Sequence record: MW384823.1
Reading direction: 5' to 3' (one strand)
Length of the DNA stretch: 64,000 nt
Shown here: positions 1-8,054 of the stretch, piece by piece
How the letters are laid out: each line of letters starts with the position of its first letter
Numbering within the stretch: position 1 is the first letter of the stretch
Made by a program: the position numbers and the translations under genes
Notes under the pieces: model-generated
Database searches by the model: none
Told to the model about the DNA's origin: nothing
Seen by the model: only the letters and a program-made list of their open reading frames with translations

Positions 1-486
1 ATGACCACGATTGCGTACGATGGAAAAACACTGGCGTCCGATAGCCAATCGACTCAAGGGAATATCCGTGTGTCGAACTCCGCGGTAAAAATCTTTTCAG
101 CCCCTCACCGTGACTGGTCAGTCGAGAACAAGCGCATCGTCGCATTCGGAGTGGCTGGTAATCTGCACGCCGCTAACGACCTGCGCGCCGCGATGGAAAC
201 ATTCGCTGGCCACAAAGCCGGTGACCCGTTTGCCAAAGGCGTTACGTTCGCGTTCATCGCGATTGCCGAAGACCGCACCGTGTTTGTTGGCGGGAAGTAT
301 TCCGACGAAGACCGTTCGTGGGTGATGCAAGCCGATGCACCGGTTGCTGTCGGTAGCGGTGGAGATTTTGCATTGGGTGCCATGGCTGCCGGTGCCAAAG
401 CCGAAGACGCTGTCCGTATCGCATCGAAGTTCGATGTGAACACCAACGACAGTGTCTCGTCCATCAATTGCTGGAGTAACACATGA
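1..486 (+). CDS. HslV/proteasome-beta-like Ntn-hydrolase peptidase
   Basis: N-terminus M-TTIAYDG gives a Thr1 nucleophile after Met removal; SDSQ, K33-like KIF and AVGSGG motifs of the HslV/20S-beta fold. Confidence 0.75.
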   Translation: MTTIAYDGKTLASDSQSTQGNIRVSNSAVKIFSAPHRDWSVENKRIVAFGVAGNLHAANDLRAAMETFAGHKAGDPFAKGVTFAFIAIAEDRTVFVGGKYSDEDRSWVMQADAPVAVGSGGDFALGAMAAGAKAEDAVRIASKFDVNTNDSVSSINCWSNT

Positions 487-818
487 GCGAAGAAAAAGTT
501 CAACCGGAGCTGGTGTTTGATTTTGCGTATCCACTCGATGAGGCATGCGCGATTCTGGGGAATACCCGCGTACCAAAAATCGCGGCGTTGACGGAAGTCG
601 TTTCCACCGTCCAGTTTCACATGTGGGCTGCAACCGATTTGGTAACCGTGATGGTTCTGTCGAAAGACGGCGATGCCACTACGGTGAATACTTACCAAGG
701 CTATAGCCCGGTAACCAAAATCGAGTCCATCAACAACGCTTTCGAGGAAGCACTCAAGGCAGCACTGAAGTCTTGGGCTTACCTTCAAACGCGCAATTTG
801 AACGACGCGGTAGTCTAA
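483..818 (+). CDS. hypothetical protein
   Basis: 111 aa ORF coupled by ATGA overlap to upstream gene. Confidence 0.7.
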   Translation: MSEEKVQPELVFDFAYPLDEACAILGNTRVPKIAALTEVVSTVQFHMWAATDLVTVMVLSKDGDATTVNTYQGYSPVTKIESINNAFEEALKAALKSWAYLQTRNLNDAVV

Positions 819-840
819 TTACAAGTTTACCCTGTTGTAT
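812..840 (+). promoter_or_regulatory. putative tRNA-operon promoter, copy 1
   Basis: AGTCTAATTACAAGTTTAC (812-830) identical to 3972-3990; both lie just upstream of tRNA genes. Confidence 0.55.
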
Positions 841-865
841 GCTGAGAAGCACGTAATTGAATTCT

Positions 866-941
866 AGGGGAGTAGCTCAGCTGGCAGAGCACCGGTCTCC
901 AAAACCGGGTGTCCAGAGTTCGAATCTCTGTTCCCCTGCCA
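866..941 (+). tRNA. trnW: tRNA-Trp(CCA)
   Basis: AGGGGAG/TTCCCCT acceptor, CCGGT-CT CCA AA-ACCGG anticodon arm, TTCGAAT T-loop, encoded CCA. Confidence 0.95.
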
Positions 942-1005
942 AATTTAGCCAGCAAGAATGTGAGAAACCGCGGAAGACCAAATAGTCAATCGCTGGAGAA
1001 TTCTC

Positions 1006-1227
1006 ATGAACTTGTATTTGCTTGAACGTCAAGACGATGTCGGTTACGACGAGTTTGATTCCATAGTCGTTGCAGCTCCTTCGGAAGCTGTAGCGCGCGC
1101 AATTCGTCCAAGGGGTGGTTGGGTTTACGGTGAGGCATGGGATGAGGCGGAAACGCTGACCTGCACAAACATCGGAACCACGCACCTCCCAATCGGGATT
1201 GTTCATGAATCGTTCAACGCAGGCTGA
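1006..1227 (+). CDS. small hypothetical phage protein
   Basis: 73 aa, GGAG RBS, followed by GGTGGGC-TTCG-GCCCACC hairpin. Confidence 0.75.
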   Translation: MNLYLLERQDDVGYDEFDSIVVAAPSEAVARAIRPRGGWVYGEAWDEAETLTCTNIGTTHLPIGIVHESFNAG

Positions 1228-1257
1228 ATACCGGTGGGCTTCGGCCCACCACACCTT

Positions 1258-1331
1258 GGGGCGCTGGCCGAGTGGTTAGGCGCTGGATTGCAAATCCTGT
1301 TACCGCGGTTCGATTCCGCGGCGTCCCTCCA
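1258..1331 (+). tRNA. trnC: tRNA-Cys(GCA)
   Basis: GGGGCGC/GCGTCCC acceptor, TT GCA AA loop, TTCGATT T-loop, T73 plus CCA; one T.T mismatch in anticodon stem. Confidence 0.92.
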
Positions 1332-1471
1332 AATACCCTGTCTCGCCCGACAGGATTTCTTTACAAAAACCCGTAGAGCCTTTCGGGGGTGAAGCTAGTT
1401 GGAGTGGTTGTTCACTCTACGGTCTTCTACTCCTGGGCGCTGGCTCACCCACCTAAAGGATAAAAAGAATT

Positions 1472-1897
1472 ATGTTCGGTCTTTTCAAAAAACGCGCTAA
1501 CCGTGCTATGTCTGAAATCAAAAAATTCGACAAACGTGACCTGGCTGAAGCCGTGGTTAACGCCGCTTACCTGATTGCTTACGCAGACGGCGAGCTGGAA
1601 TCTTCTGAGAAAGCGAAAATCGATCAGGTGCTGCGCGCCAACCCGGTACTGTCTAACTTCCAGTCCGAGCTGAACGCAATTGCTTCTACCATCATCGCTC
1701 AGCTGGAAGCGGACATCGACATCGGTCGTCGTGCTGCCCTGCGCCAGATTGCTGATGTAAAAGGCGACCAGCGCGAGTGTGAAGACGTGCTGGACGTTGC
1801 TGTGGCTATTGCCCGTGCTGATGGCGAAATCGAACCGGCAGAAGTTGAAATGCTGAAACAGATCGCCGAAGCGCTGGGTCTGCGTTACGACGCGTAA
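1472..1897 (+). CDS. terB: TerB-family (tellurite-resistance-like) protein
   Basis: AAYLIAYADGELESSE and AIARADGEIEPAE duplicated xADG..E motifs typical of TerB; high-expression codon bias. Confidence 0.85.
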   Translation: MFGLFKKRANRAMSEIKKFDKRDLAEAVVNAAYLIAYADGELESSEKAKIDQVLRANPVLSNFQSELNAIASTIIAQLEADIDIGRRAALRQIADVKGDQRECEDVLDVAVAIARADGEIEPAEVEMLKQIAEALGLRYDA

Positions 1898-1900
1898 GCC

Positions 1901-2083
1901 ATGAAGCTGAAAACCAAGTTATACATCGTGGCCGCGTTGCTGCTGATGCTGCTTGGCAACTTCGTTGGGCGAGCCTTCACGTTAATCGCCTACGTAGCTG
2001 TAATCGGCGTAGTAGCCTATCTGGTCTGGCCGGTCATCAAGAAGTTTGCGGCGAAGTCGCAGGCGAAGGTGAAAGGCAAGTAG
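1901..2083 (+). CDS. small two-helix membrane protein
   Basis: 60 aa, two hydrophobic segments, basic C-terminus. Confidence 0.75.
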   Translation: MKLKTKLYIVAALLLMLLGNFVGRAFTLIAYVAVIGVVAYLVWPVIKKFAAKSQAKVKGK

Positions 2084-2149
2084 TAATTCGGTGCGGGGGT
2101 CGTTCCCTCCGCACCACCCTTTTCTTCTCATCTAAAAATAGGTATAACC

Positions 2150-2989
2150 ATGAGAAAGGTGCTTTTCGGAATACTTGCAGCGTTGACGTTTAGCATGTCC
2201 GCCGTAGCGGCAGACGAAGTAGTCATTACCACAGGACAGCAGGGCCTGACCTATAACTCGGTCTATGGTGTTAATCTGGCCGGTGCTATCAGCGAGTTCG
2301 GTACTCGTGCACGGGTCATCCCGTCGAAGGGGTCGTTAGACAACCTCGACAAAGTCGCTGCCGGTGAAGCCCAGATTGGTTTCACGCAGGCAGATGCTTT
2401 CCAGTTCTGGCGTGCTAAGCACCCGAACGAAGCGCAGAACGTTGACATCGTCGGTCAGCTGGCCCGTGAATGTGTATGGGTCGCTGTCAAGAAAGACGGC
2501 AAGGTCAAAGATGCGAAAGATTTAACCGATGGCGTGAAAATCGCAGTCGGTGAACCGGACTCTGGCTCGTACGCGAGCTGGCAATACCTGCAACAGTTGG
2601 TGAAAGAGTATTCCAAAGCGGAAACTTATGCCAAGGGTGGTATCCGTTCGTTGTCCAAAGTGGCAACGGGTGAGTACGACGCATTCCTGTGGGTATCAGC
2701 GCCGGATAAAAGCAACAAATTCCTCGAAGCGGTCAATCAAGACAGTTCTGGTTTAGAGCTGATTGACATGAGCACATGGAACGTCAACGACAAACTGCCT
2801 AACGGCCAGTCAGTCTACACGAAAGAAACGGCCAAGACAGACAAGACCGCGTTCTTCGGTAAGAAAGTTGATGTTCCGTGCACCACCACACTCGTCGTGG
2901 CCAACACTGACGCTGGTGATGATCTGCTCGAAACCGTTTCTACCATCCTCCTGAAAAACAATTCACGAGTGATGGGGGACAAAAAATAA
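2150..2989 (+). CDS. TAXI-family TRAP-type solute-binding-like periplasmic protein
   Basis: Signal peptide (MRKVLF...AVA-ADE), ITTGQQGLTY, SKGSLDNL, IGFTQAD, VGEPDSGS motifs. Confidence 0.75.
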   Translation: MRKVLFGILAALTFSMSAVAADEVVITTGQQGLTYNSVYGVNLAGAISEFGTRARVIPSKGSLDNLDKVAAGEAQIGFTQADAFQFWRAKHPNEAQNVDIVGQLARECVWVAVKKDGKVKDAKDLTDGVKIAVGEPDSGSYASWQYLQQLVKEYSKAETYAKGGIRSLSKVATGEYDAFLWVSAPDKSNKFLEAVNQDSSGLELIDMSTWNVNDKLPNGQSVYTKETAKTDKTAFFGKKVDVPCTTTLVVANTDAGDDLLETVSTILLKNNSRVMGDKK

Positions 2990-3000
2990 AAATATGTACT

Positions 3001-3587
3001 GACCCAGTGCATCTTTTCGGGCTGGGTAGGGTTGATGTCCCTACCTGCGCGGTGTTCGTTAAGGCTGGTAACGTTCGCTAAGACCTATCGCATACCCGTA
3101 AGTCGATAGTAGCCGGTTACACAAAGAACTATCCATTGGGTAGGTAACTGACCGTTCACGATCTCATTAGGTGAGCAAATAATCTATGCAAGGACTTCTA
3201 GGATTTGTGCTCGACATGATGGGTAGCTTACGCCGCCTCATCAAGCAGTTACGAATCTGGAAGCTTGCCCATTACTGGTTTACAGGCGAAAAGGCTTCTC
3301 GTGAGAGAGCCACATGCAAACTGCGTATTTACATTAGTATGTTCACGGCTGTGAGCATAGGTCAAGCCCCGGAACGATAAGCCGGTCAGCTACGCCTGTA
3401 AAATACAATCTGAAAATCATAATGGGATTAAGTTCCCAGATTTGAAAAGGCGACTGTGTGTCGTCGGCGATAACCCCCCGTCGTGGACTCGGTTATCCCA
3501 AAGGTAATGTGAAAGGGGTTGGTGCTTGGAGGCGCTAAGACCGGCGGATACGCTGGCTCAGAAGAAGAAGTCCATCAACCCCATTCT
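3001..3587 (+). ncRNA. putative large structured non-coding RNA region (about 590 nt), or several tandem small RNAs
   Basis: No credible ORF; helices 3219-3229/3261-3272, 3279-3288/3393-3402 (10 bp perfect), 3293-3311 (GTGA tetraloop), 3338-3346/3351-3359, 3469-3475/3491-3497, 3515-3524/3573-3582. Confidence 0.55.
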
Positions 3588-3642
3588 CACCTAAGTAACT
3601 CTTTTACAGAGTGTTACTTATATATGCGAAAGCGAGGTGAAC

Positions 3643-3969
3643 ATGGGAACGTATCGTGAAGGTCCTGAAAGTACGGTGACTCACCGTAGTCATGATTACT
3701 CTGTGGATGCATTGCTGGATATAGCGGAACGTCATAGCCTCGTTCAAATTCCAGTGTCTAGAATAGAATGGATTTTAAACGAGACTACGCTCGATGATGA
3801 GCGGGTTAAGAATGCAGATACGGATTATCCAATAATCGTGCTGCACGAAGGAAGTTTGTATATTGTATTAGACGGTGCCCATCGCCTTGCGAAGGCGGTT
3901 GCCGAAGGGCGGGACACCATCGCAGCCAAGATACTTGTGCCTGCGAATCTACCGAAACCGGTACGATAA
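3643..3969 (+). CDS. small ParB/sulfiredoxin-fold protein
   Basis: YPIIV...VLDGAHRLAKA signature; GAGG RBS before ATG 3643. Confidence 0.75.
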   Translation: MGTYREGPESTVTHRSHDYSVDALLDIAERHSLVQIPVSRIEWILNETTLDDERVKNADTDYPIIVLHEGSLYIVLDGAHRLAKAVAEGRDTIAAKILVPANLPKPVR

Positions 3970-3971
3970 AA

Positions 3972-4000
3972 AGTCTAATTACAAGTTTACACTGTATTAT
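3972..4000 (+). promoter_or_regulatory. putative tRNA-operon promoter, copy 2
   Basis: 19-nt exact repeat of 812-830 followed by ACTGTATTAT, ending one base before a structured RNA at 4001. Confidence 0.55.
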
Positions 4001-4084
4001 GTCGGAAACCCGATTTGATGTTGCACAGGGCGCTACGCTGCGGCGTTTGCCGGTGTGCAGGGTTAGGTCGGGATTCTGGCACCT
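4001..4084 (+). ncRNA. long-stem RNA Z
   Basis: 4001-4013/4068-4080 pair (12 of 13 positions), inner helices TTGCAC/GTGCAG and ACGC-TGCG-GCGT, 3' tail ACC(T). Confidence 0.5.
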
Positions 4085-4088
4085 ATTT

Positions 4089-4173
4089 GGCGGGTTACTC
4101 AAGCGGCAACGAGAGCAGACTGTAAATCTGTTGACTTCGGTCTTCGGTGGTTCGAGTCCACCACACGCCACCA
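4089..4173 (+). tRNA. trnY: tRNA-Tyr(GTA)
   Basis: GCAGA-CT GTA AA-TCTGT arm, variable arm GAC-TTCG-GTC, A73 plus CCA; G.A mismatch in acceptor. Confidence 0.93.
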
Positions 4174-4179
4174 AACAGT

Positions 4180-4254
4180 TGGGGTATAGCCAAGCGGTAA
4201 GGCCCAGGGCTTTGATCCCTGTATGCCTAGGTTCGATTCCTAGTGCCCCTGCCA
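4180..4254 (+). tRNA. trnQ: tRNA-Gln(TTG)
   Basis: CAGGG-CT TTG AT-CCCTG arm, unpaired 1:72, G73 plus CCA. Confidence 0.93.
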
Positions 4255-4259
4255 CACAA

Positions 4260-4481
4260 TGGTACCTGTCACAGCAGCCCTTGAGGCTTACGCGAAGATG
4301 ACTGGCAGCCTCCTTTTACCGGGTAACACATTCCTGCCAGCGTGCTATTGCCGCGAAGGTTTGTCCCCGGTGTCGTGCGTTATTCGGGTCTACCCACGGT
4401 CTGCGGACGGTGCGCTGATGTCTCGATATACGCCATAGGGCAGCCTTGAGAACTCCGTGGGATTCGGAGGGGTACCACCCA
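4260..4481 (+). ncRNA. RNA A: about 220-nt RNA with a tRNA-like acceptor stem and T-arm
   Basis: GGTACCT(4261-4267)/GGGTACC(4470-4476) 7 bp, adjacent CTCCG-TGGGATT-CGGAG 5-bp/7-nt arm, tail A-CCCA. Confidence 0.55.
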
Positions 4482-4552
4482 TTCTTGTGTTTCCTTATCC
4501 TGAAGACATTCGTAAGACAAATCCATTCGTGGTCGAGGAAACACAGAACCCA
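4482..4552 (+). ncRNA. RNA B: 13-bp stem RNA ending C-CCA
   Basis: TTC(T)TGTGTTTCCT/AGGAAACACAGAA then CCCA; abuts RNA A, 4 nt before tRNA-Asp. Confidence 0.6.
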
Positions 4553-4556
4553 TTCT

Positions 4557-4631
4557 AGGACTGTAGTTCAGTGGGAGAACGCCGCCCTGTCACGGCGGAG
4601 GTCGCGGGTTCGAAACCCGTCAGTCCTGCCA
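4557..4631 (+). tRNA. trnD: tRNA-Asp(GTC)
   Basis: CCGCC-CT GTC AC-GGCGG arm, G73 plus CCA. Confidence 0.95.
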
Positions 4632-4639
4632 TTTTCAAA

Positions 4640-4715
4640 TGCGTCTTAGCTCAGTTGGTAGAGCGCACCCCTGATAAGGGTGAGGTCACTGGTTCAAGTC
4701 CAGTAGATGCAACCA
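4640..4715 (+). tRNA. trnI: tRNA-Ile(GAT)
   Basis: CACCC-CT GAT AA-GGGTG arm, A73 plus CCA. Confidence 0.95.
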
Positions 4716-4721
4716 AACACT

Positions 4722-4799
4722 GGTGTATGTAGTTCAGTTGGTTAGAATTCCGGCTTGTGACGTCGGAGGTCGAGAGTTCAAGTCTCTCCATACACCCCA
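4722..4799 (+). tRNA. trnH: tRNA-His(GTG) with encoded G-1
   Basis: G-1:C73 pair, CCGGC-TT GTG AC-GTCGG arm, CCA. Confidence 0.95.
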
Positions 4800-4805
4800 A
4801 ACAAT

Positions 4806-4881
4806 GCTCCCATCGTCTAGAGGCCAAGGACCCCAGGTTTTCAGTCTGGTAACCCCGGTTCAAATCCGGGTGGGAGTACCA
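4806..4881 (+). tRNA. trnE: tRNA-Glu(TTC)
   Basis: CCAGG-TT TTC AG-TCTGG arm, TTCAAAT T-loop, CCA. Confidence 0.92.
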
Positions 4882-4903
4882 TGTTATCCTCACGTAAATC
4901 ATC

Positions 4904-5006
4904 GCCGGTGTAAGGAAGTGGCCAAACCTAAGTAGGTCGTGAGGTAAAAGCTCACCACTGAACACCCTAAGGGTTCCTGAGGTTCGAGTCCTCAGTACCG
5001 GCACCA
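4904..5006 (+). tRNA. atypical 103-nt Leu-like tRNA with enlarged anticodon arm; anticodon undetermined
   Basis: GCCGGTG/TACCGGC acceptor, A73-CCA, D-arm, long variable arm, TTCGAGT T-loop; anticodon loop 12 nt longer than normal, with inner GTGAG/CTCAC hairpin. Confidence 0.65.
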
Positions 5007-5007
5007 T

Positions 5008-5183
5008 GTTCTCTTGCTGTGGGAAATAGAAGCGAACGTAGAAACGCCGATTAGCTTAAAGCTTAGAGCATCTTACCCTAGCGGTAAGGCAGTAGGGGCG
5101 CAACCCGAATTCCCTATCGGCAACGGCCTGCTTGTCAGGATTAGAAACATCTACGTGGATGGGTACTTCTACAGCGAGAACCA
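5008..5183 (+). ncRNA. RNA C: long-stem RNA enclosing a tRNA-like domain, ends CCA
   Basis: Outer stem 5008-5022/5169-5181, inner helix 5036-5042/5150-5156, tRNA-like cloverleaf 5046-5121; followed by AACAGT, the same spacer as after tRNA-Tyr. Confidence 0.6.
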
Positions 5184-5189
5184 AACAGT

Positions 5190-5262
5190 GGGAGCATTGT
5201 CCATTGTGACACCGGCAAAGGTTTCGTACCTTGCGGGTTGGGCGGAAGCCCGATGTTCCCCC
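5190..5262 (+). ncRNA. RNA D: 10-bp stem three-way-junction RNA
   Basis: GGGAGCATTG/CGATGTTCCC; inner hairpins with TTCG(T) and GGAA loops. Confidence 0.5.
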
Positions 5263-5383
5263 GAACGCTGGCCTTCTGGCCAATACAGTGAAAGCTTACC
5301 CTTGCCGTTGATCACCTCTTCTGCTGCTGCCAACACACTGTATAACCGGAATCAGTCCTGCCTTAAATGGCAAGCGTTCACCC
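5263..5383 (+). ncRNA. RNA E: cloverleaf-like RNA
   Basis: GAACGCT/AGCGTTC 7 bp plus ACCC; GGCC/GGCC arm; ATACAGTG/CACTGTAT arm with large loop; TGCC-TTAAAT-GGCA arm. Confidence 0.5.
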
Positions 5384-5388
5384 TTTAC

Positions 5389-5466
5389 GTTTCCTCAAGG
5401 CGGCTTGGGGTGTTATCTCTCGGCTCTGTTGGGTAACATCGTGGTTCAACTCCATGGGAAACACCA
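5389..5466 (+). ncRNA. RNA F: remodelled tRNA-like RNA with A-CCA end
   Basis: GTTTCCT/GGGAAAC acceptor, GTGG-TTCAACT-CCAT T-arm, 9-bp central arm with 14-nt loop, no canonical anticodon loop. Confidence 0.6.
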
Positions 5467-5472
5467 AACAAA

Positions 5473-5542
5473 GACCTCTCGCGTTGGTGTGCTAAAAGTG
5501 CTTTATTGCGCTGCTAGGATGGTTCGAATCCATCAGAGGTAA
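5473..5542 (+). pseudogene. degenerate tRNA (no CCA, 6-nt anticodon loop)
   Basis: ACCTCT/AGAGGT stem, GATGG-TTCGAAT-CCATC T-arm; D-arm eroded. Confidence 0.5.
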
Positions 5543-5619
5543 GTGCACGGCTGTTAAGCTGGTTAACACCCGACTCATAATCGGATATTCGCGGGTTCGA
5601 TTCCCGCTCGTGTGCGCCC
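5543..5619 (+). tRNA. atypical tRNA-Met/Ile2(CAT)
   Basis: CCGA-CT CAT AA-TCGG arm, GCGGG-TTCGATT-CCCGC T-arm; 6-bp D-stem TGTTAA/TTAACA, wobble-rich acceptor, ends GCCC. Confidence 0.7.
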
Positions 5620-5625
5620 TATTTA

Positions 5626-5701
5626 GACTCTGTAGCTCAGTTGGTAGAGCGGATGACTGTTAATCATCAGGTCACAGGTTCAAGCCCTGTCAGAGTCGCC
5701 A
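5626..5701 (+). tRNA. trnN: tRNA-Asn(GTT)
   Basis: GATGA-CT GTT AA-TCATC arm, G73 plus CCA. Confidence 0.96.
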
Positions 5702-5703
5702 CA

Positions 5704-5774
5704 TTTTGCATTGCCCGAGTCCCGAATGACATTCCGGAAAAATATCATCCATGGTCAAGGGCAGTGCAGAACCA
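5704..5774 (+). ncRNA. RNA G: 13-bp stem RNA ending CCA
   Basis: TTTTGCATTGCCC/GGGCAGTGCAGAA then CCA. Confidence 0.55.
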
Positions 5775-5778
5775 AAAT

Positions 5779-5838
5779 CCCAGCCTTCGCAGAAAAAGCT
5801 TACCTGCATTAGCGGTCCCCTGCGGGGGTTGGGTACCA
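5779..5838 (+). ncRNA. RNA H: 14-bp stem RNA ending TA-CCA
   Basis: CCCAGCCTTCGCAG/CTGCGGGGGTTGGG then TACCA, then a T-rich tract ending the cluster. Confidence 0.5.
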
Positions 5839-5972
5839 CCTTTGTCCGTTTTGTTTTTTTCTCTTAATTGTCTGGCGATGATGGCGGGAACAAAACGGAT
5901 AAAGCCCTAGCGGGGGAAAAGCCGCTAACAACAACAGAAGCAGTAAAAACAGAAGTAAAAGCAGGAGTAGTT

Positions 5973-6785
5973 ATGTTTACTATCTTACGTAAAATCAATG
6001 GTAACCGCACACCAACCGAACACGAATCCCCAACGCTGGGTGATACGAAGTCACAAGTGTTCAAAGATGCGATGTCGCTTTTGACCGAATCCAATAACGT
6101 GCACAACTGCATGGATTCTGGGATGGATGCGAAGCCGTGGATTAACGGCAAACCCAAACCGATTGAAGAATGGGTAGAACGCTTTGAGAAAGTATTCGGT
6201 GCGACCGACGTAGACAACCAAGAGCTGGTTTCTCTGGTCAGTGAACTCGCACCGGGGATGTTTGATAAAGCGAATGCGCGTTTTGCCTCCGACTTTGGTC
6301 AGCTGCAAGAAGCCTTCCTGAAAGACACCGGACAAACCATCATCTGGAAATGTCCGAAAGGACTCCCGATTGATATCCAGTTCCAAGACATCCCCCGTCA
6401 GTCTGTTGAAACGCTCCACACAACTCTCGATTTCATCGAAGCTGGTGAATTGAAGTTTGCGGTGTTCAACAGCAAGGCGTTGTGGGATGGGTATAACTCC
6501 GCTGAACTGTTTGGCGGAGAAGCCACCGAGATTTCCTCGGTAGAACTCCAGCACGTTTACCATGACGATACGGCGATGCCGCAAGAAGCGGTACTGAAAG
6601 CCAGCCGTCGTGGTACCCGCACCATGGAACAGGTCATTGGGGTGCTTGCCTATGGCAGCTCCGAACAGCCTGACCCAACCACGGGCAATGTGCCGGTCAC
6701 CGTGATGACCTACGAGTTTATCTACCAAGGCGATGAAGTCTACATTACGAACCGCCACGGCAAGACTGTAGACTCCATCCGTTAA
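5973..6785 (+). CDS. hypothetical protein
   Basis: Start moved to ATG 5973 (GCAGGAG RBS); about 270 aa. Confidence 0.8.
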   Translation: MFTILRKINGNRTPTEHESPTLGDTKSQVFKDAMSLLTESNNVHNCMDSGMDAKPWINGKPKPIEEWVERFEKVFGATDVDNQELVSLVSELAPGMFDKANARFASDFGQLQEAFLKDTGQTIIWKCPKGLPIDIQFQDIPRQSVETLHTTLDFIEAGELKFAVFNSKALWDGYNSAELFGGEATEISSVELQHVYHDDTAMPQEAVLKASRRGTRTMEQVIGVLAYGSSEQPDPTTGNVPVTVMTYEFIYQGDEVYITNRHGKTVDSIR

Positions 6786-6887
6786 GCATTAGCATGCTCG
6801 CTAATACCCGCCCTGAGGATTGGCCTCCTCATGCTTGAAGGGCGACTCTCCTGTAGTACGCTTTGTAAGTCGACGTAAATCGGTACG

Positions 6888-6930
6888 CCCTCTCCCCGAA
6901 AAGGGAGAGGGTAGTATCGTATATTTTTTT
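6888..6930 (+). terminator. intrinsic terminator
   Basis: CCCTCTCCC/GGGAGAGGG stem, downstream T-run. Confidence 0.6.
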
Positions 6931-6935
6931 GGATA

Positions 6936-6951
6936 TATATTACCTAGGTGA
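6936..6951 (+). promoter_or_regulatory. phage early (virion RNAP)-type promoter
   Basis: TATATTACC-TAG-GTGA; matches phiKZ early consensus TATATTAC and five other copies here. Confidence 0.7.
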
Positions 6952-6999
6952 GATTAAACTATAATCTTAACCTACCATTAGACTTCCGAGGATAAACTT

Positions 7000-7983
7000 A
7001 TGCATTACGCACCAATGTCAGCACACGAAACCTTTGCCGCTCGTGGTTACAGCCCAGAAGAAGGTAAACGTATTCGCGGCTATCTACCCCGTCGCTTTGG
7101 CGATATCAGTAATGCGCTCCCTTTAACGAACGCAGAGTTCTGGCTGGCGTACGAGTGCATGAAGCACTACAACGATAACAGTCGTGAACGTGGACGTTTC
7201 TACGCCGCAGGCCCATTCAATTTCCAATCCAATGGAAAAGTCAACTACCGTTCTGAAAAACTCAACGAAGACTTCTCCATGGTGGAATTCATCCGCCACT
7301 TCGGTGATACGGTGTTCACTGACTTCGACGCTGAATTGGGCATGAAAGTTCCACGCACCAATGCAGACGGTTCGCTGGTCATGAAGAACCGTATGGTGGC
7401 CACTCGCTTAGTCGAGATCGAGAAACAGGCACAGCCGCAGTCCGAAGACTTTTCGAGCTGGCACACCACGAGCTGGATGAACTTCCCGGTCGGTTCACTC
7501 TCCTTACCACCGACGGGTAGCATCACGCCTGAAACGGTATTGATGGCAAGCCTACACGGTATGATGGCGCAGGAGTATGTTAATACCCAAGCTGGGCGTA
7601 TGCTGCACCCGACTCTCGATTACAAGTGGGTTGCGACTTACGTGTACCTGAAGCGGTTGTACCATGCGCGTGACCGCCAGTTCGGTCAAGACTATCATGG
7701 TATCCGTAGCACCATTGAGATGAATCTGCGCTTCCGTACAAGTACCGCCATGTACCCAAGTGATGTCATGACGCCGCCGCACTTCTTCCACATCGATGCG
7801 GATCGTGTTATGTCTGCAAACGGTATTCTGAACCACCCACGTTTACACAATACGAAACCTATGGGCTTTTATGAGTCCCTGTATCGCTTCAACAACAACG
7901 GCCATGTTGCTGCCATTACAACCATTCCTACTGAACTTTTCAATGAGTACAGCGAAGAAGAATGGAAAGCAGTTTTAGCATAA
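7000..7983 (+). CDS. hypothetical protein (putative early gene)
   Basis: 327 aa ORF, GAGGA RBS, downstream of early promoter motif. Confidence 0.8.
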   Translation: MHYAPMSAHETFAARGYSPEEGKRIRGYLPRRFGDISNALPLTNAEFWLAYECMKHYNDNSRERGRFYAAGPFNFQSNGKVNYRSEKLNEDFSMVEFIRHFGDTVFTDFDAELGMKVPRTNADGSLVMKNRMVATRLVEIEKQAQPQSEDFSSWHTTSWMNFPVGSLSLPPTGSITPETVLMASLHGMMAQEYVNTQAGRMLHPTLDYKWVATYVYLKRLYHARDRQFGQDYHGIRSTIEMNLRFRTSTAMYPSDVMTPPHFFHIDADRVMSANGILNHPRLHNTKPMGFYESLYRFNNNGHVAAITTIPTELFNEYSEEEWKAVLA

Positions 7984-8054
7984 CCTCAAAGCGGGATTAA
8001 AACCCCGCTTTATTTTTTTACTTGAATACCTGATTTATATAGGAGGGTAACATC

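Follow-up and report, generated by a model that had tools for sequence, protein, structure and literature searches.

Dual-function bacterial RNAs such as RNAIII/hld of Staphylococcus aureus and SgrS/SgrT are structured RNAs that also encode a short helix-forming peptide. Bacteriophage T4 produces two stable RNAs, species 1 and 2 (rnaC and rnaD), of about 120-140 nucleotides (nt) and devoid of open reading frames (ORFs), which are processed from the transcript of its tRNA cluster. GOLLD and ROOL RNAs reside in phage and prophage genomes, frequently within tRNA arrays (PMC12990946). The function of these large structured RNAs of phage tRNA arrays is a standing puzzle. To our knowledge, no large structured RNA associated with a tRNA array has been described for nucleus-forming jumbo phages. 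Here we report on an element at positions 3023-3590 of a 64,000-nt stretch of sequence record MW384823.1 (hereafter the window, numbered as in the record), which derives from Erwinia phage pEa_SNUABM_43, a 242-kb jumbo phage of the genus Machinavirus, and is identical in pEa_SNUABM_42. The locus harbours a genuine structured RNA that is strand-specific, supported by covariation and representative of a new family, and that contains a conserved reading frame under selection. It has three parts: a 146-nt 5' domain, a folded ORF of 55-64 codons and a 3' region with a 76-nt hairpin at its end. With a confidence only a little better than even, we interpret it as a dual-function RNA, structured and coding at once, that is made with the tRNA array and represents a previously undescribed modular family. 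Members of the family are found in enterobacterial nucleus-forming jumbo phages (Machinavirus, Seoulvirus/SPN3US and phiEaH2-like phages).

RNA-level selection in the 5' domain and the 3' region

The region was recovered by blastn from 48 phage records (jumbo phages of Erwinia, Salmonella, Escherichia and Proteus), nearly always unannotated, and two pattern scans of IMG/VR yielded further contigs. Homology extends end to end, over about 3023-3590, in 14 non-redundant phages sharing 52-96% pairwise identity. A pattern scan of metagenomes returned 120 loci, only one of which, an SPN3US-like copy, was real after nhmmer filtering, the rest being chance matches. The copies of the relatives always lie in unannotated or 'hypothetical' space, and the sole annotation within the element is a 64-amino-acid hypothetical protein at 3186-3380. 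Our analysis thus corrects the annotation of most relatives, which are blank here or bear spurious small ORFs such as Huxley gp10.

The 5' domain folds into a four-way junction closed by a pseudoknot and consists of the following features.

3023-3168, + strand: 5' domain, pseudoknotted four-way junction of 146 nt, with compensatory changes and a covariance model, R2
3023-3031/3039-3047, + strand: helix H1
3034-3037, + strand: GAUG of the H1 loop, 5' strand of the pseudoknot, pairing with CAUU 3165-3168
3050-3053/3151-3154, + strand: helix P2
3057-3061/3069-3073, + strand: P2a, a variable hairpin
3077-3078/3112-3113, + strand: P3, of 2 base pairs (bp)
3085-3090/3104-3109, + strand: H2, with a conserved 13-nt loop (ACC..UAAG)
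3115-3120/3144-3149, + strand: H3a
3121-3128, + strand: conserved bulge ACAAAGAA
3129-3134/3138-3143, + strand: H3b
3165-3168, + strand: CAUU, 3' strand of the pseudoknot, pairing with the H1 loop

Taken as eight helices in a MAFFT alignment, this domain shows 90.8% of cells paired and compensatory changes at 26 of 43 pairs, versus 5-11 in slid controls, in which pairing partners were shifted by 1-3 columns in the alignment. Realignment of 19 sequences from five lineages with the covariance model R2, built on the domain, raises these values to 94.7% and 33 of 42 pairs (9-13 in slid controls); R2 scores the copy in the window at 152 bits. The pseudoknot 3034-3037/3165-3168 was revealed by a covariation scan. 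It is 98.7% paired among the 19 sequences, with AU, GC, CG and UG found at one position and AU and GC at another, and because it is absent from the covariance model, the alignment cannot lean towards it.

The 5' domain also occurs by itself. R2 matches it alone in the Agricanvirus phages Ea35-70 (81 bits), RAY and AH06, where the copy heads a 920-nt unannotated gap lacking tRNAs or a homologous ORF; in Ea35-70 and RAY the domain is followed by about 700 nt without a conserved ORF. In the IMG/VR contig L201 it precedes a terminator-like hairpin with a U-run and then a 172-amino-acid P-loop ORF, while in contig L202 it lies 19 nt after a tRNA-Tyr and ahead of a 120-amino-acid ORF. No R2 match was found in phiKZ, 201phi2-1, PhiPA3, CR5, PhiEaH1, PCH45, phiR1-37 or Goslar. 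Since it stands alone in other lineages before different sequences, the 5' domain is an autonomous module.

Several observations were made around these isolated copies. In Ea35-70 the gap (L147:1416-2340, record positions 167221-168145) has the homologue of the 5' domain at its start, as does its counterpart in AH06 (L152). The roughly 700 nt past the domain display compensatory changes between Ea35-70 and AH06, e.g., GGUAACAG/CUGUUACC versus GGUAGCGG/CCGCUACC, and include a tRNA-like piece with the T-arm-like sequence GGUGGUUCAACUCCACC that ARAGORN does not call; this gap probably holds a second, different large structured RNA. A Walker-A-like ORF of 172-194 amino acids (GPRQSGKS or GPRQTGKT) adjoins the 5' domain in three lineages (L201:1171-1689, L152:920-1438 and L202:4017-4601 on the minus strand), downstream of it in AH06 as in L201; in L202 the ORF lies upstream, on the far side of tRNA-Tyr. 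The AH06 version has no match in Pfam, and tblastn detected no clear homologue of this ORF within the window. A hypothetical ORF between tRNA-Trp and tRNA-Cys of the window (1006-1227) resembles part of the 120-amino-acid ORF of L202 (tblastn, 51% over 35 amino acids, E = 2e-7).

The remainder of the fold comprises a central domain and the 3' region.

3279-3402, + strand: central domain within the 10-bp helix 3279-3288/3393-3402
3293-3311, + strand: GNRA hairpin inside the central domain, with loop GUGA at 3301-3304
3337-3358, + strand: hairpin inside the central domain
3365-3367/3389-3391 and 3370-3372/3382-3384, + strand: stop-codon hairpin, with TAA 3378-3380 in its loop
3405-3413 and 3422-3439, + strand: invariant blocks ACAAUCUGA and AUGGGAUUAAGUUCCCAG, which include a small hairpin GGGA/UCCC
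3449-3465, + strand: hairpin GGCGAC-UGUGU-GUCGUC, 91.7% paired, compensatory changes at 4 of 6 pairs
3469-3497, + strand: variable hairpin cassette (GAUAACC...GGUUAUC)
3511-3586, + strand: 3' terminal hairpin of 76 nt, with compensatory changes and an energy z of -3.4
3511-3527/3568-3586, + strand: outer stem of the 3' hairpin
3535-3536/3560-3561, + strand: inner pairs of the 3' hairpin
3538-3546/3551-3558, + strand: inner stem of the 3' hairpin
3547-3550, + strand: GAUA loop of the 3' hairpin

The 3' hairpin, which surrounds an invariant purine-rich internal loop (GGAG...GAAGAAG), is 98.1% paired, with compensatory changes at 10 of 26 pairs versus 0-4 in slid controls. Its model, R1, scores 108 bits in the window and found matches only in the element's own clade. 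Huxley gp10 (L002:2123-2245), annotated as a 40-amino-acid ORF, overlaps this conserved hairpin and is probably a spurious call. The blocks at 3405-3439 are the most conserved unpaired or short-paired sequence of the element, and their invariance makes covariation untestable there. In the stop-codon hairpin all cells pair (100%) and one change is compensatory. The site 3469-3497 hosts at least three unrelated cassettes whose distribution departs from overall similarity (L017 compared with L010, L019 with L013), and the relatives L020 and L021 keep the outer stem of the 3' hairpin around a replaced interior. This replacement and the isolated occurrence of the 5' domain show that the element is built of modules and is not one indivisible RNA.

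The first-pass annotation had described a densely paired region with named helices. These helices are present, and compensatory changes bear them out in the 5' domain and the 3' hairpin. The perfect 10-bp helix with a GNRA loop inside was likewise found, both parts being real, but its role as an organising helix did not survive comparison: it is invariant in 9 of the 14 phages, broken without compensation in the other 5, and receives no covariation support. The proposal of tandem small units ending in CCA was abandoned, as neither triplet (3498-3500, 3581-3583) is conserved.

By folding energy, the segment 2990-3640 is more stable than its shuffled versions (z = -3.7), and so is its reverse complement (z = -3.5), for which reason folding energy alone is not decisive; by part, z is -0.9 for 3021-3180, -3.7 for 3181-3504 and -3.4 for 3505-3592. 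The comparative evidence for structure is the stronger of the two. Stability of both strands, together with the proximity of a ParB-like gene in the window, could point to an element acting as DNA, e.g., an origin of replication, a cluster of promoters or a site at which the ParB-like protein would act in partition. We give this next to no credence. The ParB-like gene is absent from most relatives that keep the element, and compensatory changes preserve pairing rather than sequence. Moreover, the helices tolerate G-U but not A-C cells, with 61 versus 10 in the 5' domain and 31 versus 3 in the 3' hairpin (92 versus 13 in total), a strand-specific excess from which it follows that the selected molecule is the + strand RNA, neither DNA nor the opposite strand. 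Selection at the RNA level on the + strand is hence shown for the 5' domain and the 3' region.

A search of Rfam 15 with cmscan over 2950-3650, on both strands and with permissive filters, gave no family at E<=10; over 1-8000 nothing but tRNAs appeared at E<=1, and the Ea35-70 copy had no match either. ARAGORN predicted no tRNA or transfer-messenger RNA (tmRNA) inside the element. The Rfam result excludes GOLLD, ROOL, RNase P, tmRNA, group I and II introns, the T-box and all curated riboswitches, and it agrees with the doubt expressed at first pass over a match to GOLLD or ROOL motifs. Apparent resemblances to RNase P CR-I/CR-II, the GTPase-centre hairpin of 23S rRNA, a T-box sequence and the R/S elements of group I introns were dropped after this result.

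A selected reading frame inside the fold

Between the 5' domain and the 3' region lies an ORF that is itself folded.

3186-3380, + strand: pEaSNUABM43_00009, ORF of 64 codons for a hypothetical protein (PHROG 26199), conserved in 14 relatives
3188-3268, + strand: long hairpin whose first base is the G of the AUG and which spans the N-terminal half of the ORF; minimum free energy -32 kcal/mol, z = -3.2

In all 14 sequences the frame is open, starts with ATG and ends at the same invariant TAA, for a length of 55-64 codons. No stop interrupts it in any of them, whereas the five other frames contain 0-6 each, about 2.5 on average. The ratio of nonsynonymous to synonymous changes (pN/pS), summed over within-lineage pairs across the first half of the ORF up to the W...YW.TG motif, is 0.40 in the frame of the ORF versus 1.07 and 1.50 when the same substitutions are scored in the two alternative frames. 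Over codons 2-25, conservation is clearly highest at codon position 2 (entropy 0.88 versus 1.33 and 1.36). Frame-specific selection at the protein level is thus shown for the first half of the ORF, while the second half changes little, as fits constraint at the RNA level. The peptide belongs to a PHROG of unknown function, carries the conserved motif R-x-W...[YV]-W-[FL]-[TS]-G and ends in QAPER, PAPDC or QAPAH. From a 12-sequence alignment, AlphaFold2 predicts a helix over residues 2-33, the predicted local distance difference test score being about 80-86 over residues 1-30 and about 50 beyond. An equivalent hairpin of 60-90 nt (z -2.1 to -4.2) covers the first half of the ORF in every lineage despite their differing sequences. 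This recurrent hairpin, added to the coding selection, indicates that RNA and protein are selected on the same bases.

The first-pass annotation had placed a large non-coding phage RNA beside tRNA genes. That setting, between tRNA-Trp/Cys and the array at 4089, is accurate and the structured RNA stands; the non-coding part of the claim does not, since the ORF at 3186-3380, whose translation and conservation the annotation itself had named as contrary evidence, is conserved with selection of the coding type. One could nonetheless envision a large RNA akin to GOLLD and ROOL that is purely non-coding and never translated, with an ORF that stays open as an accident of RNA constraint. Its size of about 570 nt, its phage origin and its position at a tRNA array match reports on these RNAs (PMC12990946), the whole ORF is folded (long hairpin, GNRA hairpin and stop-codon hairpin), the start context is weak, and the C-terminal half of the ORF evolves as RNA rather than as protein. 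We nevertheless judge this explanation improbable. A shuffled copy would hold an open frame with a chance of only 3-9% per sequence, yet the frame is open in 14 of 14 although the N-terminal halves are barely alignable across lineages. The ATG is kept in every lineage, the pN/pS of 0.40 and the conservation of position 2 are confined to the frame of the ORF, and neither GOLLD nor ROOL is matched in Rfam.

The main rival takes the opposite side and regards the locus as an ordinary gene for a small protein whose untranslated regions are structured, which we consider possible but unlikely. The 5' domain would then be a cis-regulatory leader that works as a riboswitch-like aptamer or binds a protein, and in which the pseudoknot competes with a hairpin hiding a weak ribosome-binding site, and the 3' part would be a stabilising 3' untranslated region or a derived small RNA (sRNA). 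The domain has the dimensions and the look of an aptamer, with about 146 nt, a junction, a pseudoknot and conserved junction nucleotides. It heads different units (the 55-64-codon ORF, the 172-amino-acid P-loop ORF of L201/AH06 and the 120-amino-acid ORF of L202), the usual signature of a cis-regulator, and in L201 a terminator-like hairpin with a U-run separates it from the next ORF. The 3' strand of the pseudoknot (3165-3168) overlaps the 5' arm of the alternative hairpin 3163-3167/3171-3175, which holds the Shine-Dalgarno (SD)-like AGGUGAG of 3169-3175. This hairpin, however, is weakly supported (79-81% paired, one compensatory pair), and the SD is at background strength. Furthermore, in Ea35-70 and RAY the domain precedes about 700 nt where there is no conserved ORF to regulate, neither ligand nor binding protein can be named, and the 3' region, with its invariant loops, is conserved more strictly than a stabiliser needs.

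The tRNA genes, promoters and expression

The element sits inside the tRNA region of the phage, with the following neighbours.

866-1331: tRNA-Trp and tRNA-Cys, upstream of the element
up to 2989, + strand: TAXI/TRAP-receptor-like gene, upstream neighbour of the element
3600-3626, + strand: promoter-like motif CUUUUACAG-N-UAUAUAUG, at the downstream boundary and ahead of the ParB-like gene
3643-3969, + strand: small ParB-like gene, downstream neighbour of the element
from 4089: array of eight tRNAs, downstream of the element

In one sub-clade, clade B (L010, L013, L015, L017 and L021), 5-24 nt separate the 3' hairpin from the start of a tRNA-Gly or tRNA-Leu gene of the same strand. The simplest reading for this sub-clade is therefore that element and tRNA are co-transcribed and that RNase P makes the 3' end of the element. 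Two long unannotated gaps in the tRNA array of the window (4255-4556 and 4882-5542), on the tRNA strand, may hold structured RNAs as well.

Late promoters of phiKZ consist of TATG, of which the G is the start site, and its middle promoters contain AAanTTACc near -24 (PMC4666361). Two similar promoter-like words occur in the window, UUUACACUGUAUUAUGUCGG (3982-4001) before the tRNA-Tyr array and UUUUACAG...UAUAUAUGCG (3600-3626) before the ParB-like gene; both look like promoters of the phiKZ type that start at TATG, and relatives have UUAUAUGUCGGGG about 70-90 nt before tRNA-Tyr. By this resemblance the motif at 3600-3626 may be used as a promoter. Just upstream of the element, a TATG follows an A-rich run (2992-2995) and precedes a 7-bp hairpin (2994-3012) and UCUUUU; 2992-3012 may represent a start site of the phiKZ type, or else terminate the TAXI-like gene, and the motif is not conserved in other clades. 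A scan for sigma-70 promoters and intrinsic terminators returned nothing above shuffles.

The same promoter pattern underlies another explanation, according to which the locus comprises two or three adjacent transcription units: a 5' sRNA (3023 to about 3170), a second RNA initiated from an internal phiKZ-type TATG promoter at the start of the ORF, and perhaps a further RNA consisting of the 3' hairpin. The ATG of the ORF in the SNU4/ChrisDB/Caitlin clade lies inside AACUUACUC-N17-UAUAUAUG, matching the middle plus late promoter pattern of phiKZ (PMC4666361). The window keeps UCUAUG at this place, and two modules, the 5' domain and the inside of the 3' hairpin, are exchangeable. However, TATG is missing at the start of the ORF in the L019/L015/L017 clade, and initiation at the G of TATG would remove the conserved AUG of a selected ORF. 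TATATATG was considered as a general promoter word and rejected, as it occurs once in the 64-kb window. Separate units thus appear very improbable.

Expression data consisted of assembled contigs of public runs, which cannot show transcript ends, strand or level. Near-identical contigs covering 3058-3195 and 3343-3556 are present in two wastewater libraries labelled 'RNA-Seq' that are probably DNA. These public contigs are compatible with an abundant RNA without demonstrating one.

Under the dual-function interpretation, the element would be transcribed together with the following tRNA array and released by tRNA-processing enzymes, with RNase P cutting at the tRNA 5-24 nt downstream in clade B. 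The product would be a stable folded RNA whose invariant loops may bind a partner, be it a protein, the ribosome or the RNA itself. The same molecule could serve as a poorly initiating mRNA for a small amphipathic-helix peptide, and an initiating ribosome would have to melt the central fold all the way to the stop-codon hairpin.

A number of observations weigh against this interpretation. In the window, the element and the tRNAs are about 500 nt apart, with the ParB-like gene and a promoter-like motif of its own in between, and the sole signal from an RNA library is one 175-nt contig (3358-3532) in a tiny metatranscriptome, which could be DNA. The central fold predicted by RNAalifold differs between two clades. 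As regards the peptide, the C-terminal half of the ORF lacks a coding signature, Pfam gives no match, and a profile search of 1.84 billion representatives found no relatives outside the clade, returning the clade's own four clusters and two low-complexity matches. Translation would start poorly, as SD complementarity of -2.5 to -4.9 kcal/mol is at background level (mean -2.7) and a hairpin of -32 kcal/mol beginning at the AUG is unfavourable. That the 5' domain is modular agrees equally well with a cis-regulatory leader and with a domain of one large RNA, and the function assigned to the element rests wholly on inference.

Comparison with described RNAs

More speculatively, the 5' domain could be the sensor of a new class of riboswitch-like or RNA-protein switches specific to nucleus-forming jumbo phages, or the whole RNA could form a self-contained particle, with an encoded peptide as its partner, and assemble in the manner of ROOL and GOLLD at the tRNA factory of the phage. 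We view these ideas as rather doubtful; if true, either would make this the first large structured RNA to have a defined role in infection by chimalliviruses. Whatever its role, the locus offers a compact pseudoknotted module that can be studied alone, a rare overlap of protein and RNA selection on the same bases, and tractable hosts, namely Erwinia amylovora, and Salmonella with SPN3US.

Among RNAs found at tRNA genes, the T4 species 1 and 2 are also phage-encoded at a tRNA cluster; going by general knowledge, with no sequence compared, the element is far larger and carries an ORF. The tmRNA (ssrA), copies of which are also found in phages, likewise combines a pseudoknot, an internal short frame, a stop codon in a hairpin and an association with tRNA genes. 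Unlike tmRNA, the element has no tRNA-like domain, T-arm or conserved 3' CCA, and its frame starts with AUG and runs for 55-64 codons, whereas the tmRNA tag spans about 10 codons, has a hydrophobic end and lacks a start codon.

The 5' domain taken alone recalls aptamers of the SAM-I type, with a junction, a pseudoknot between loop and tail, conserved junction nucleotides, a location just upstream of a start codon and different genes placed behind it. It differs from riboswitch aptamers in having neither a riboswitch match in Rfam nor a hint of a ligand from gene context, and in preceding non-coding sequence in Agricanvirus.

GOLLD (RF01998) and ROOL (RF03087) resemble the element in their length of hundreds of nt, their many conserved helices and loops and their location in phage tRNA arrays. 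In contrast to them, the element matches neither covariance model (E<=10) and inhabits enterobacterial chimalliviruses rather than Lactobacillales or rumen prophages, and it possesses a conserved ORF under selection along with a 5' domain that occurs independently.

RNAIII/hld and SgrS/SgrT show no homology to the element, and belong to host regulons rather than to a phage tRNA array; its coding region, unlike theirs, is almost entirely paired. What it shares with them is a length of several hundred nt, many hairpins, a short encoded peptide that forms a helix, and selection on both RNA and peptide: here, selection was found on RNA structure and, at the protein level, on the first half of the ORF only.

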